A program made the translations under genes and the position numbers. Below, in pieces: positions 7,518-28,744 of a stretch of DNA of 29,824 nucleotides. The notes beneath the pieces are model-generated. The model saw only the letters and a program-made list of their open reading frames with translations, was not told where the DNA came from and did not search any database. Source of the DNA: Octopus sinensis (lineage: Eukaryota). Where the stretch lies: positions 1 through 29,824 of the forward strand of contig NW_021832711.1 in assembly GCF_006345805.1 (NCBI RefSeq), read 5' to 3'. The stretch's first letter is position 1, and each line of letters starts with the position of its first letter.

Positions 7518-7568
7518 CTTTATTTTGCATCATATTGTATATACTCAGTTTTGGTGTTTCCCCAGTCT
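7518..7568 (-). CDS. Cytoplasmic micro-exon class T, copy 1 (51 nt, phase 1-1): (E)TGETPKLSIYNMMQNK
   Basis: Identical to 25677-25727 including splice sites; carried by the 18-kb duplication. Confidence 0.7.
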
Positions 7569-7753
7569 CTGAGAAAAAAATAAGACAGTGAAAGGCATTT
7601 AAGTAAATTATAAATTAATAACATTTAATGAAAATATACAATAAATGTTCTAATACAATGAATATTTTATCATAAACATTCAGAAATTTAATGAAAATTT
7701 ATAAAATTGGAAAAATTCGATTTTTCTAATGCGCGTCGAGGTTTATTACTCAA

Positions 7754-8455
7754 GGGTCACCATAACCTTCTTTTTAAAGAACTTAGGTTTAGGGAAGTTT
7801 TTCGATGCTTCATTTTGGTGCAACCACTGCGAAGTTCGTTCTTTTTATTATTAGTGTACACAATCCACTTTTCATCGCAGGATACAATACGGTCGAGAAA
7901 TGCATCGGTCTAGTTACGGAGAAGAAGCGATGAACAAATTTTCTGATTTCAATTGAAATCGTAGGGTACCCATTTGTCGAAATGTTTTGAATTTCCGATC
8001 GCTGGCAGTTTTCTAGCAAACTTGAAATTTATTTACCAGTTCTCGAGTGATTTTATGTGGATCTTCCTCAATGACGGGTTTTAATTAAACGTCATCGATG
8101 ATACATGGGCGTTTACTACACTCATGTTCTACAGGTCTCAGGGCTCCACTGCGAAATCGTTGAAACCATTTTCGAGATGACCACTCACTGATCATTTCTT
8201 CACCAACATTTCGTTGATATCGCGAGCAGTTTCAGCTGATATACATCCATTTTTGAATTTGAATAGTAAAATTGTTTGAATATCGCGCTTTGACATTTCC
8301 ATTTCAGATGATTGCAACAGCGGTGAAAAAATATCGATATTAATCTATCGATGCATCTGGGAAGCCTAAGTCTGTATCATCAGACAATTGCCAAAACTTG
8401 TTTTAATAATCAAAAAATCTACAAAATAATGCTTACTTTTGACTCAATCTCATAT
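7754..8455 (-). mobile_element. Mariner transposon relic (left TIR plus N-terminal half of transposase, truncated after KKVMVT)
   Basis: ATG at 8302. With frameshifts: MEMSKRDIQTILLFKFKNG...AETARDINE...WFQRFRSG...KWVP...FLDRIVSCDEKWIVY...SQWL...PKPK..KKKVMVT. TIR-like atgagattgagtcaaaagtaagcatt at ~8429-8455 abuts (TA)n. Confidence 0.88.
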
Positions 8456-8597
8456 ATATATATATATATATAATATATATATATATATATATATATATAT
8501 ATATATTATATATATATATATATATATATATATATATATATTATAATATATATATATATATATATATGTATGTATGTATGTATGTATATATATATAT
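8453..8597. repeat. Interrupted (TA)n/(TATG)n tract at the 18-kb duplication boundary
   Basis: Direct reading. Confidence 0.95.
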
Positions 8598-8865
8598 CGC
8601 CTGGCCCTCGTGCCGGTGGCACATAAAAAGCACCATCCGTTCGTGGCCGTTTGCCACCTCTGTCTGGCACCAGTGCGGGTGGCACGTAAAAAGCACCCAC
8701 TACAGTCACGGAGTGGTTGGCGTTAGGAAGGGCATCCAGCCGTAGAAACACTGCCAGATTTGACTGGGCCTGATGACGCCTTCTGGCTTCACAGACCCCA
8801 GTAGAACCGTCCAACCCATGCTAGCATGGAAAACGGACGCTAAATGATGATGATGATGATGATGA
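8598..8865 (+). mobile_element. SINE or 5'-truncated RTE 3'-UTR copy
   Basis: gtgccggtggcac..aaaagcacc, ggagtggttggcgttaggaagggcatccagc, aacccatgctagcatggaa and (GAT)n tail, all shared with the LINE end at 6644-6859. Confidence 0.85.
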
Positions 8866-8876
8866 TATATATATAA

Positions 8877-9463
8877 TTTATAGAAGGAGCTTCTACAGGA
8901 CTAGAACTGTTTCATTCAAAAGAAATCATCAGGAAGCTTGGTGATAGAATAGTTTTGGCATTTATACATTTAGGCAGATTTAAGTGGTGGTGGTGGGGGG
9001 GACTTTTTGGGGTAGGCATGGCGCAAACTGTCTTTCTTAGGGGAGTGGTCAAAAGAATCAGTGATAAAGTAGATAAAAGAATAAATAGAATAATAGAATA
9101 GAGTTTTAGGTAAATAAGAAGACTATCGCTTATATATATATATATATATATACACATATACACACATACACATATATATATATATATATATATATATGCA
9201 CCCATATACATACATATACGTACACACCCATACACATACTCATACATACACACATACATATATCCATACACACACACACACATATATATATATATATATA
9301 TATATACAAATACACACATACATACATGCCAACATGCAAGCACATGCACACATATATCTACACACATATATATAAAAAGGAATATACACCCCCATACACA
9401 CACGCTCACATATATATATATACACATATATATACACACACACACATATATATATATATATAT
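8877..9463. mobile_element. Truncated, inverted remnant of the long-TIR element
   Basis: Matches the reverse complement of ~27300-27870, including the right-arm-specific subterminal gataaaagaataaatagaat and the microsatellite mosaic. Confidence 0.85.
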
Positions 9464-9493
9464 ATCTGGTATTTGTTCATATATATATATATA

Positions 9494-9766
9494 TCATCAT
9501 CATCATCATCATCGTTTAACGTCCGTTCTCCATGCTAGCATGGGTTGGACGGTTCGACCGGGGATCTGGGAAGCCAGAAGGCTGCACCAGGCTCCAGTCT
9601 TATCTGGCAGGGTTTCTACATATGGATGCCCTTCCTAACGCCAACCACTCCGTGAGTGTAGTGGGTGCTTTTTACGTGCCACCTGCACAGGTGCCAGGCG
9701 AGGCTGGCAACGGCCACGGTTGGATTGGTGTATTTTATGTGCCACCGGCACGGAAGCCAGACGAGG
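9494..9766 (-). mobile_element. SINE or RTE 3'-UTR copy, minus strand
   Basis: (CAT)n followed by the reverse complement of the same tail. Confidence 0.85.
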
Positions 9767-10099
9767 CATGAATGTTTTAACATGAATGTTTTAACATGCA
9801 ATTTTAACCAACATTCAGAAAGTTAATGAAAAATTTTAAAAACTGAAGAAAATCTACATTTTAAAATGGCTGGCGAGTATAAAAATTATAGTTAGGCTTG
9901 ATTCAGCTCGACTCAACTTTTGTTTGGTCAAGCACTATAAGGTTTTCACCAGTAGCTTTTATCGTTTAATTCATTCATTATTTTCTTAACCCATGAAGAA
10001 ATCATATTGCCAAATGTGTTATGAGGAGGTCAATAAGGAATGCATGATTAAATGTCAAGATATCAAATGAATCTTTTTCAAAAGTATTGATTCTATTTA

Positions 10100-26614: not shown

Positions 26615-26644
26615 ATATATATATATATATATATATATATATAT

Positions 26645-27947
26645 GTAGGTCCCGGGTTGAGTCGGGGTTAACCACAGTAAATAAGGTACTCAATACATAG
26701 CAGAGTAAATTAATTTATTTTATAGAAGGAGCTTCTACAGGACTAGAACTGTTTCATTCAAAAGAAATCATCAGGAAGCTTGGTGATAAGAATAGTTTTG
26801 GCATTTATACATTTAGGCAGATTTAAAGTGGTGGTGGGGGGGGACTTTTTGGAGTAGGCATGGCGCAAACTGTCTTTCTTAGGGGAGTGGTCAAAAGAAT
26901 CAGTGATAAAGTATATGTATGTGTATACATAGAACACGTGCGTTTGTGTATGTGTATGAGTGTGCGTGTGAGTGTGTGTGCGTGTGTGAGTGTTTGTGTT
27001 CGTATCAGTGGGAAGAAAGATAGTAAGGAAGGGAGAGGGGCAATAAATGGTTTTTTAGGCCGGCTAGCTCCCTCGGGAGGGTCTTACTTCAGTGCCGGCC
27101 TGGTAGCTCGAGGTCAAAATAAAAATAAAAATAAAATAAAATAAGGGAAGAAATGTGTGTGTATATGTGTGCATGTATATACATATGTATATATATGTAT
27201 ATATGTATATATATATATTATATATATATATATATATATATATTATATATATATATATATTATATATATATATATATGTGTGTGTGTGTGTGTGTGTGTG
27301 TGTGGTGTGTGTGTGTGTGTATATATGTGTATATATATATGTGAGCGTGTGTGTATGGGGGTGTATATTCTTTTATATATATATGTGTGTAGATATATGT
27401 ATGCGTGTGCTTGCATGTTGGCATGTATGTGTGTGTGTATTTGTATATATATATATATGTGTGGATATATGTATGTGTGTATGTATGAGTATGTGTATGG
27501 GTGTGTACGTCGATGTATGTATATGGGTGCATATATATATAGATATATATATATATATGTGTGTGTATGTGTGTATATGTGTATATATATATATATTTAT
27601 ATATAGAGATATATATATATATATAAGTGATAATCTTCTTATTTACCTAAAACCCTATTCTATTTATTCTTTTATCTACTTTATCACTGATTCTTTTGAC
27701 CACTCCCCTAAGAAAGACAGTTTGCGCCATGCCTACTCCAAAAAGTCCCCCCCACCACCACCACTTTAAATCTGCCTAAATGTATAAATGCCAAAACTAT
27801 TCTTGTCACCAAGCTTCATGATGATTTCTTTTGAATGAAACAGTTCTAGTCCTGTAGAAGCTCCTTCTATAAAATAAATTAATTTACTCTGCTATGTATT
27901 GAGTACCTTATTTACTGTGGTTAACCCCGACTCAACCCGGGACCTAC
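26645..27947. mobile_element. Non-autonomous element with ~270-bp TIRs embedded in a (TA)n microsatellite
   Basis: 26645-26913 (gtaggtcccgggttgagtcggggttaacc...gataaagta) is a near-perfect reverse complement of 27677-27947; (TA)n on both sides; non-coding microsatellite interior. Confidence 0.9.
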
Positions 27948-27990
27948 ATATATATATATATATATATATATATATATATATATATATATA

Positions 27991-28130
27991 CAGTGGCCAG
28001 AATGAGTTTAAGACCGATGAAGACAGATCTATTCCTTAATTTATTTTCAACAAAGCTGTATAAAATTATTTTACTTTTTACAGCTTATGTAGGATTTCTT
28101 TCTCTTTCCAATGATACAGACGTTATATAT
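27991..28130. mobile_element. Tc1-like transposon terminal fragment
   Basis: TA|cagtggccagaatgagtttaagaccg resembles a Tc1 TIR (CAGTG start after TA); no partner end found. Confidence 0.5.
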
Positions 28131-28146
28131 CTTTCTACAATTCGAT

Positions 28147-28262
28147 ATATGCTCAGTGACATTTCATCCGTCTTTATGTTCTTTGTTTAAATTCTAGACT
28201 GATAAAATAAATAACACTTGTGTACTTGGGTCGACGTAAACGATTTGCCCCTGCCCCATTTC
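28147..28262 (+). mobile_element. Degenerate, internally deleted CORE-type SINE fragment
   Basis: catttcatccgtctttatgttc...gataaaataaataacac...gggtcgacgtaaacga resembles the copy at 28310. Confidence 0.5.
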
Positions 28263-28309
28263 TGCTGGCCTTCAAACATAATTTTAAAATCTATATTTAG
28301 CTTTAGTAA

Positions 28310-28520
28310 GGCGGTAAGTTGGTAGAATCGGAAGCACACCGGACAAAATAATTACTAGCATTTGGTCCATCATTAATTTCTGAGTTCCACTTCCACCGAG
28401 ATCAACTTCGCCTTTTAGAATTTCGGGGTCATTAATATAAGTACAAGCTAAGCAATGGGGTTGATGTAATCGACTCAGCTCCTCTCCGGAAATTGCTGAC
28501 CTTGTGTGTAAATATGAAAC
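28310..28520 (+). mobile_element. tRNA-derived CORE-type SINE
   Basis: A-box-like TGGTAGAATCGG, B-box-like GAGTTCCACTTCC, CORE-like tttcggggtc...ataagtac, tail ggggttgatgtaatcgact...ccttgtg. Confidence 0.7.
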
Positions 28521-28621
28521 TAATTAACACTTAAACCAACGGTAGATACCCAAAGCAAGTACTAATCGGGTACGAAGCACCTAAAACAAATATTTTAAAT
28601 AAATGTCTAAAATCAAAATAC

Positions 28622-28744
28622 CTCTTTTATATTTGCGAGTTTTCATTATAATCCAGGGCAGAAAACATCCAAGAATGAACAGAAGTGGAAATAAAACCAC
28701 GAAGACTATGATCACAGTATAACTTATTGGCGTAGGATTTTTAC
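28622..28744 (-). CDS. Transmembrane exon (123 nt, phase 1-1) of a probable single-pass type I membrane receptor
   Basis: Minus strand reads gatttttttttcag|GTAAAAATCC...TATAAAAGAG|gtattt. Open frame (G)KNPTPISYTVIIVFVVLFPLLFILGCFLPWIIMKTRKYKR: ~25 hydrophobic residues followed by the basic cluster KTRKYKR (positive-inside rule). Unique, non-repeat sequence. Confidence 0.8.

Follow-up and report, generated by a model that had tools for sequence, protein, structure and literature searches.

How a receptor could come to carry a cytoplasmic tail made of paralogous, very short exons is the question raised by a stretch of 29,824 nts from Octopus sinensis, which represents, in reverse orientation, the whole of the unplaced contig VCDQ01000338.1 (assembly GCA_006345805.1) and is referred to below as the window. 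An earlier reading of its nucleotides (the original prediction) had proposed that a transmembrane (TM) exon and five micro-exons form a hidden single-pass receptor gene with an expandable intracellular tail. The analysis described here supports a real spliced gene with a TM exon followed by a tail of paralogous symmetric micro-exons. The gene probably encodes an immunoglobulin (Ig)-superfamily receptor with a modular tail, copy-number-variable and alternatively spliced, whose cassettes would provide docking or sorting motifs.

The exons of the window

The six predicted peptides are all encoded on the minus strand (Table 1), and coordinates, phases, splice borders and the open frame were all verified: every exon is phase 1-1 with AG/GT borders, and the six join into one open frame without a stop codon. 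The TM exon encodes a hydrophobic span, with Kyte-Doolittle 19-residue means up to 3.2. Behind this span lies the basic stop-transfer sequence KTRKYKR, by which the tail would be on the cytoplasmic side. Each of the five following exons, the cassettes, is preceded by a ...ctgtcttattt(N)ag acceptor with its pyrimidine tract and ends in (A/G)AAG followed by a gtagg donor. The composite pattern TGTCTTAT-N4-12-AG-N44-54-GTAGG is found exactly 5 times in the window, while 0 occurrences are expected from 100 shuffles.

Table 1. Exons, annotated start exon and long direct repeats of the window (window coordinates)
Feature	Position	Strand	Description
TM exon	28622-28744	minus	123 nt, phase 1-1; encodes KNPTPISYTVIIVFVVLFPLLFILGCFLPWIIMKTRKYKR
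Cassette A1	25677-25727	minus	51 nt, phase 1-1; (E)TGETPKLSIYNMMQNK, has YxxM motif
Cassette B1	17636-17683	minus	48 nt, phase 1-1; (E)NGQLLKHGYVPVNYE
Cassette C	15097-15147	minus	51 nt, phase 1-1; (G)PSIILEEADSRPVSNE; used in XP_036355101.1
Cassette B2	12237-12287	minus	51 nt, phase 1-1; (E)NGQLLDRSEYVLVPYE, ITIM-like SEYVLV; used in XP_036355101.1
Cassette A2	7518-7568	minus	51 nt, phase 1-1; every base as in A1; closes the partial NCBI model
Annotated start mini-exon	29186-29210	minus	25 nt, MASQTIDD + G; XP_036355101.1 model
Left copy of near-identical direct repeat	1-8484		equals 18175-26644; contains A2 plus intronic transposon remnants
Right copy of the same direct repeat	18175-26644		carries A1
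B1-bearing unit of inner duplication	15230-17749		found by self-comparison
B2-bearing duplicate	9778-12353		about 95-97% identical to 15230-17749
ITIM, immunoreceptor tyrosine-based inhibitory motif.

Although all five micro-exons of the original prediction are real exons, they represent three types (A, B and C) and not five independent observations. B1 and B2 belong to the inner duplication, of about 96% identity; B2 has diverged from B1, including by an indel of 3 nts, and a B2-type exon (ENGQLLDRSEYVPVPYE) is present in an O. vulgaris model (P0009). A1 and A2 are identical because positions 1-8484 repeat 18175-26644 at 99.56% identity, and this pair may be a feature of the assembly or of a haplotype. 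A fourth type, D, is known from related loci. Between types, in the window and at these loci, the 60 nts upstream of the cassettes are 62-79% identical and the 40 nts downstream 48-78% identical, whereas the exon bodies are barely alignable (41-55% identity). The shared flanks reflect common descent rather than chance or convergence, and types A to D all derive from a single ancestral exon together with its splice-site flanks. The window was also searched for the D-type, terminal and 231-nt extra-TM exons of the relatives, none of which is present in it, and an Rfam scan of the window gave no matches.

The gene is not hidden, as the original prediction had it, since NCBI had already annotated it as LOC118761365, using four of the six exons. 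The Gnomon model, XP_036355101.1, is partial (100 amino acids, lacking a stop codon) and joins a 25-nt start exon to TM, C, B2 and A2, skipping A1 and B1. Of the two skipped cassettes, A1 has an identical exon that is used twice in the paralogue LOC115232395, and the B1 peptide also occurs in an O. vulgaris model (P0006).

A small gene family in Octopus

Relatives were found by an exhaustive profile-free protein search, further searches and cluster look-ups, while a word-indexed search with the spliced peptide matched only the window's own protein, XP_036355101.1. Among the annotated proteins in the databases searched, the family is small and confined to Octopus. In O. sinensis, LOC115232395 on CM016860.1 has three isoforms: X1 reads TM-A-B-A-B-C-D-D-terminal, while the first B is missing from X2 and one D from X3. 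On CM016862.1, two gene models adjoin, LOC115210431, consisting of a putative signal peptide and an ectodomain, and LOC115211119, consisting of the TM exon, a 231-nt exon and then A'-B-C'-D×6-terminal, of which isoform X2 lacks three D cassettes. The TM exon of the window is identical to that of LOC115211119 and differs at 14 of 123 nts from that of LOC115232395. The only apparently full-length model of the family is CAI9721815.1 of O. vulgaris (567 amino acids), in which a putative signal peptide and about 260 ectodomain residues are followed by the TM exon, an extra exon, A'-B-C'-B-C-D-D-D' and the terminal exon; a second O. vulgaris protein, CAI9718808.1, carries a B2-type cassette. A distant relative in O. 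bimaculoides, LOC106873011 (P0011), has the ectodomain module in common (59% over 69 residues). Past this module it continues into a multi-pass region of about six hydrophobic segments with no A-D cassettes, and the module may have originated in a multi-pass membrane protein.

Isoform X1 of LOC115232395 was rebuilt exactly from genomic exons, with the TM exon and every tail exon in phase 1-1 and bordered by AG/GT. Its tail consists of cassettes of four types, of 16-17 residues each, and a terminal exon of 14 residues. Tail introns in the family measure about 2.5-13 kb. At three loci, the window and the two chromosomal paralogue loci of O. sinensis, 21 of 21 cassettes keep ag before and gtagg after the exon, have lengths of 48, 51 or 54 nts and differ by indels in multiples of 3. 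The original prediction had named frame-breaking indels and lost GT-AG sites at orthologous loci as observations that would speak against it; as far as the paralogues allow, neither occurs in these 21 cassettes.

Tandem duplication of units of about 3-18 kb, which contain exons together with transposon remains, lengthens or shortens the tail, and the loci differ accordingly in the number and order of their cassettes. LOC115211119 (L004 28798-51591) has six D-type cassettes, four of which recur in tandem at regular intervals of about 3.35 kb. The terminal exon is itself duplicated in the merged L003+L004 sequence, its two copies (merged coordinates 107913 and 111970) being separated by about 4 kb. 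That the tail is expandable is borne out, the array growing by tandem duplication. Annotated mRNA isoforms of the paralogues differ by whole cassettes with the frame intact, and this part of the isoform claim stands, while combinatorial use of the cassettes would go further than the annotated forms.

The 231-nt exon (L004 11167-11397, the same as L003 63476-63706; DVSLLRKYF...QDGT) is phase 1/1 and encodes two hydrophobic segments with an N-glycosylation sequon between them, giving a three-pass protein. It occurs in LOC115211119 and in O. vulgaris and is absent from the window and from LOC115232395.

The ectodomain

Between the last ectodomain exon and the TM exon of the paralogues there are 2.2-2.3 kb, whereas the window extends over only 1.08 kb upstream of its TM exon. 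From this spacing, the ectodomain of the window's gene most likely lies past the right edge, as had been predicted. Its nature has been deduced from the modules of the relatives, the window itself carrying no ectodomain. In the X1 rebuild, the modules are exon pairs of 98+160 nts and 98+136 nts with phase-1 outer borders. The N-termini of P0006 and P0007 read MEKFAVTLFLMI(L/H)LCSRCEA, a putative signal peptide as judged by eye and from hydropathy, which would go with a type I topology.

A structural model of a single 87-residue module, built from six module sequences, shows eight strands with a predicted local distance difference test score (pLDDT) of 89 and a predicted template-modelling score (pTM) of 0.75. 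Its top fold matches in the PDB are the major histocompatibility complex (MHC) alpha-3 domain, beta-2-microglobulin and the butyrophilin IgC domain, with TM-scores (template-modelling scores) of 0.7-0.8, and Foldseek matched the module to Ig constant-type domains with a probability of 1.00 and E-values down to 5e-4. C29 and C69 do not vary in the module alignment; their spacing of 40 residues is within the range of about 40-60 typical of the cysteine pair in strands B and F of Ig domains, and phase-1 introns at domain borders are likewise an Ig-superfamily feature. When the entire ectodomain (264 residues) was modelled from a 4-sequence alignment, the result was poor (pLDDT 36). Sequence-based searches were largely negative: the Pfam scan of the modules gave no Ig match, family products had no significant Pfam match, and the N-terminal domain gave only a sub-threshold match to I-set (E = 0.048, 14 bits against a cut-off of 23.7); PDB sequence searches matched nothing. 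Going by the modelled fold, a divergent receptor of the Ig superfamily is the most fitting description of the family.

The full protein, known from the paralogues and from O. vulgaris, begins with a putative signal peptide, an N-terminal domain and two or three Ig-type modules of about 86 residues, crosses the membrane once, or three times where the 231-nt exon is kept, and ends in a tail of A, B, C and D cassettes, each encoded by its own 48-54-nt phase-1/1 exon, closed by the 14-residue terminal exon.

The annotated start exon and the split gene models

Taken at face value, the NCBI model describes a different protein, namely a transmembrane adaptor without an ectodomain, which starts at MASQTIDD, exposes about 14 extracellular residues and serves as a LAT-type scaffold rather than as a receptor. 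NCBI models at two loci begin with the MASQTIDD mini-exon, an in-frame TGA lies 10 codons upstream of its ATG, and the overall layout, with little sequence ahead of the TM span and tyrosines in the tail, is that of such an adaptor. If the annotated start were real, the likeness to the LAT family would include the tiny ectodomain, the TM span, a disordered tail with several tyrosines and small exons. However, the product has neither a juxtamembrane CxxC palmitoylation motif nor a YxN motif, and its relatives have a large Ig-like ectodomain. Moreover, a 16-nt deletion in LOC115232395 takes out the donor of the mini-exon, and in LOC115211119, over identical sequence, the donor was modelled 6 nts further on (MASQTIDDGKG...), which points to an ab initio choice. 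In the O. vulgaris model, the ectodomain runs straight into the TM exon.

In LOC115211119, the ectodomain exons form a separate gene model 1.9 kb upstream, and this split coincides with a 1-nt deletion. The last ectodomain exon on CM016862.1 (L003 ~60430) has lost one base compared with the paralogue (ttctgg to ttct-g), which gives ...SNYSEM followed by a stop and led NCBI to separate the ectodomain (LOC115210431) from the TM exon and tail (LOC115211119). Likewise, one nucleotide is missing from a short run of As in the first ectodomain exon on CM016860.1 (L002 ~9945; atgaag to atg-ag); because of the resulting frameshift, the models of LOC115232395 begin with an internal methionine and have no signal peptide. 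This deletion could be a long-read consensus error. Gene models at these loci are truncated or split as a consequence of single-base indels and near-identical tandem units. The start mini-exon is probably a computational fill-in and not the true 5′ end, and the adaptor is an improbable reading of the locus; a LAT-like adaptor, at first the favoured interpretation, was dropped after the paralogues, the splitting deletion and the deleted donor in LOC115232395 came to light.

Divergence of exons and introns

Substitutions were counted inside the BLAST high-scoring segment pair spanning each exon. This procedure replaced a global alignment of fixed 400-nt flanks, in which microsatellites and insertions inflated intron divergence. 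Paralogous exons that differ do so at about 10 times the divergence of their introns (Table 2), the remaining exon pairs being identical and the D cassettes showing no exon excess.

Table 2. Substitutions in paralogous exons and in the introns aligned with them
Pair	Exon	Intron	p
TM, window vs LOC115232395	14/123 (11.4%)	33/2929 (1.13%)	1.6e-9
A vs A'	6/51 (11.8%)	25/2160 (1.16%)	5e-5
B1 vs B2	7/48 (14.6%)	17/612 (2.8%)	9e-4
C vs C'	6/51 (11.8%)	45/2149 (2.1%)	9e-4

Over these four exon pairs, the Nei-Gojobori method gave 32.5 non-synonymous and 1.5 synonymous differences. The proportion of non-synonymous differences (pN) is 0.159 and that of synonymous differences (pS) 0.027, about the intron rate, hence a pN/pS of 5.9 (Fisher p = 0.014), with small counts. 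The changes sit in the middle of the cassettes, where tyrosines appear, disappear or change their context, as in A (SIYN to FTHD), C (ILEE to TLYD) and B (K-HGYVPVN to DRSEYVLVP). Relaxed constraint alone is insufficient for exons diverging 10 times faster than introns, for which diversifying selection or templated micro-conversion is needed.

These figures bear directly on the proposal that the loci are decaying lineage-specific copies, the cassettes being functionless drifting relics and the annotated isoforms noisy splicing. In its favour, ectodomain exons of both chromosomal copies have 1-nt deletions, the family has a very narrow taxonomic range, its products have no Pfam matches and the searches turned up no transcript-derived proteins. 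Neutral decay nevertheless predicts equal exon and intron rates and a pN/pS near 1, whereas ratios of about 10 and 6 were seen; all 21 cassettes retain both splice sites and an open frame, with indels in multiples of 3; and both deletions fall in short base runs (aa and gg), a typical site of long-read consensus errors. Decay is accordingly a very unlikely account of the family.

Repeats and status of the contig

Both chromosomal loci align colinearly with the window (93-100% identity), but the window is a mosaic. Its right 1.7 kb, TM exon included, are 99.5% identical to LOC115211119, while the next 1.5 kb (28324-26825) match LOC115232395 only, at 96-98.6%, and lack the 231-nt exon, as that locus does. 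Most of the remaining window is 98-100% identical to both chromosomal loci, and the B2 region is at most 93-95% identical to any sequence fetched. About 1.8 kb after C, near position 13329, a junction leads back to sequence normally found upstream of a B cassette.

Superimposed on this mosaic is the direct repeat listed in Table 1, whose copies are 99.56% identical over 8.49 kb with a period of about 18.17 kb, so that the left end of the contig falls about 0.5 kb short of the next expected B cassette. The copies show 28 differences, with none in 731-6322 (5.6 kb) and a cluster of substitutions in 6323-7425. A very recent tandem duplication with conversion would account for the repeat, as would a join made in assembly or between haplotypes. 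For the contig as a whole, the alternatives are a third locus or haplotype that arose when cassette units were exchanged unequally, and a partial mis-assembly.

An artefact of assembly or haplotype, in which the family is real but the A-B-C-B2-A array and the 18-kb repeat of the contig are not a separate locus, is possible, if on balance doubtful. The sequence is an unplaced one of 29.8 kb ending in a compound microsatellite, its similarity to LOC115211119 and LOC115232395 is mosaic, and its internal 8.5-kb repeat has a 5.6-kb stretch free of differences. A simple chimera would nevertheless not account for 28324-26825, which reaches only 96-98.6% identity to its sole match, or for the B2 region at 93-95%. 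In addition, O. vulgaris independently has a B2-type exon, and the repeat copies differ by 18 substitution events, which is atypical of long-read indel noise.

Several other elements were observed in the window. An open reading frame (ORF) at 4615-5013 on the plus strand, present again at 22788-23186, has an RVT_1 match just above the Pfam cut-off (E = 4.6e-7, 30.2 bits); it belongs to an intronic remnant of the non-long-terminal-repeat type, antisense to the receptor gene, and a downstream ORF (5557-6039) is probably part of the same retroelement. Two minus-strand ORFs, at 13500-14147 (215 amino acids) and at 2686-3024 (112 amino acids, repeated at 20859-21197), have no Pfam match and resemble transposon remnants. 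Two pairs of inverted repeats with arms of about 300 nts, 26613-26916 / 27674-27979 (98% identity) and 8609-8885 / 9476-9752 (88% identity), enclose microsatellite-rich sequence and resemble foldback or terminal-inverted-repeat elements. Close to the right end of the contig, 29600-29790 is a long compound tetranucleotide microsatellite (GATA/GACA/GAAA on the plus strand), which is the likely cause of the assembly break there.

Possible roles of the tail

The spliced product contains matches to several short motifs: YNMM (YxxM), SEYVLV in B2 (ITIM-like), YVPV and YVLV (Yxx-hydrophobic) and ENGQLL (acidic dileucine). The cassettes would act as short linear docking or sorting motifs, of the phosphotyrosine/SH2 type (YxxM and (S)xYxx(V)) together with acidic dileucine, and we infer that the tail is a phosphotyrosine docking array. 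The choice of cassettes and their copy number would then tune which intracellular partners or sorting machinery are engaged, and the cassette repertoire would be under selection to diversify.

The same motifs can be read as trafficking signals, Yxx-hydrophobic and acidic-dileucine sequences setting endocytosis or lysosomal sorting. YNMM, YVPV and YVLV fit Yxx-hydrophobic and ENGQLL fits [DE]xxxL[LI]. This role is unlikely to explain the array, as the dileucine is not conserved in the paralogues (ENGQVL), the D cassettes, which are the most amplified, carry neither kind of signal, and the motifs are short and ambiguous.

A number of points weigh against a receptor with a modular docking tail. 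No immunoreceptor tyrosine-based activation motif (YxxL/I-x6-12-YxxL/I) was matched in the spliced product, SEYVLV in B2 is the single match in the tail to the ITIM consensus [SILV]xYxx[ILV], and such short matches are expected fairly often by chance; D has no tyrosine. The splicing and the isoforms come from two annotation pipelines, NCBI Gnomon for O. sinensis and another for O. vulgaris, the protein searches matched nothing of transcriptome-type origin, and short-read junction evidence is ambiguous given the near-identical duplicated cassettes. With regard to the accelerated exons, clustered substitutions may partly be single multi-nucleotide or micro-conversion events, inflating the non-synonymous count, and two ectodomain exons show an exon excess in which synonymous changes are also raised (pN/pS about 0.7). 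Each chromosomal paralogue is short of one nucleotide in an ectodomain exon, which may reflect errors in the long-read consensus or decay of the copies. Finally, the order A-B-C-B2-A was seen in neither chromosomal locus, and the contig that carries it is unplaced and ends in a microsatellite. With these points taken into account, an Ig-superfamily receptor with a modular tail is still considered the probable product of the gene.

Comparison with known systems

The closest architectural precedent for this receptor is PECAM-1 (CD31), as a matter of resemblance and not of homology. In PECAM-1, Ig domains and a single TM span are followed by a tail for which eight alternatively spliced exons code; exon skipping changes its SH2 partner, and loss of exon 14 abolishes SHP-2 binding (PMC5664058). 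An Ig ectodomain, a single TM span, multiple short alternatively spliced tail exons and tyrosine motifs are common to PECAM-1 and the octopus family, between which no sequence homology was detected in the Pfam and PDB sequence searches. In contrast to the octopus cassettes, the tail exons of PECAM-1 are not a recent paralogous array, are not copy-number-variable and are not known to evolve faster than their introns.

The original prediction compared the cassettes to schistosome micro-exon genes (MEGs) and to Dscam. MEGs have short symmetric exons, long introns and skipping variants and are lineage-specific and fast-evolving (bioRxiv 10.1101/2023.06.21.545858). The octopus family resembles them in its very short symmetric exons, long introns and lineage-specificity, and to this extent the analogy stands. 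It fails at the level of the product, since MEGs are small secreted proteins encoded almost entirely by micro-exons, whereas in octopus the micro-exons encode only a cytoplasmic tail and a strong TM span precedes them. MEG exon sizes (3-81 nts) are found in the octopus tail only, the ectodomain and TM exons measuring 98-160 nts, and MEGs belong to a different phylum and have no homology to the octopus family.

With Dscam, the family has in common tandem paralogous exons in an Ig-superfamily receptor gene and a diversity of isoforms. However, Dscam cassettes encode ectodomain half-Ig units and are mutually exclusive, whereas the octopus cassettes are cytoplasmic, serial, and skipped or kept. 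A cassette logic of the Dscam kind has to be abandoned, given that the annotated products hold 3-8 cassettes in series with the same type repeated.

Tandem duplication of an exon with its flanks, in which the frame is kept and usage varies, is also found in the PEVK region of titin and in fibrillar collagens with their 54-nt exons. The products there are elastic or triple-helical structural repeats and not a receptor tail, and the arrays are not known to show signs of diversifying selection.

Significance

No paper naming these loci was found in the library searched, and a broader search on cephalopod Ig receptors returned nothing relevant. The family is known only as uncharacterised LOC annotations, and the immune and recognition receptors of cephalopods are poorly known. 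The novelty seems to lie in the meeting, within one receptor tail, of a mini-exon array of recent amplification, copy-number differences between loci and exon-focused acceleration.

A more speculative reading, to which only a small probability is given, is that of a fast-diversifying recognition-receptor system of the Octopus vulgaris species complex, whose diversity is made on the signalling side. In such a system, copy-number-variable arrays and cassette skipping would combine with positive selection that makes and destroys tyrosine docking motifs, the driver possibly being pathogens that target the tail or the discrimination of self from non-self. If true, it would constitute a cytoplasmic counterpart of the ectodomain diversification of Dscam, FREPs and the sea-urchin Trf genes.

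The family offers an example of a receptor tail that is built, expanded and re-wired by tandem duplication of a single mini-exon, and of accelerated evolution focused on exons, which diverge about 10 times as much as their introns. If the cassettes are docking motifs, it would also illustrate how short linear motifs evolve by exon duplication and motif turnover in an invertebrate receptor.

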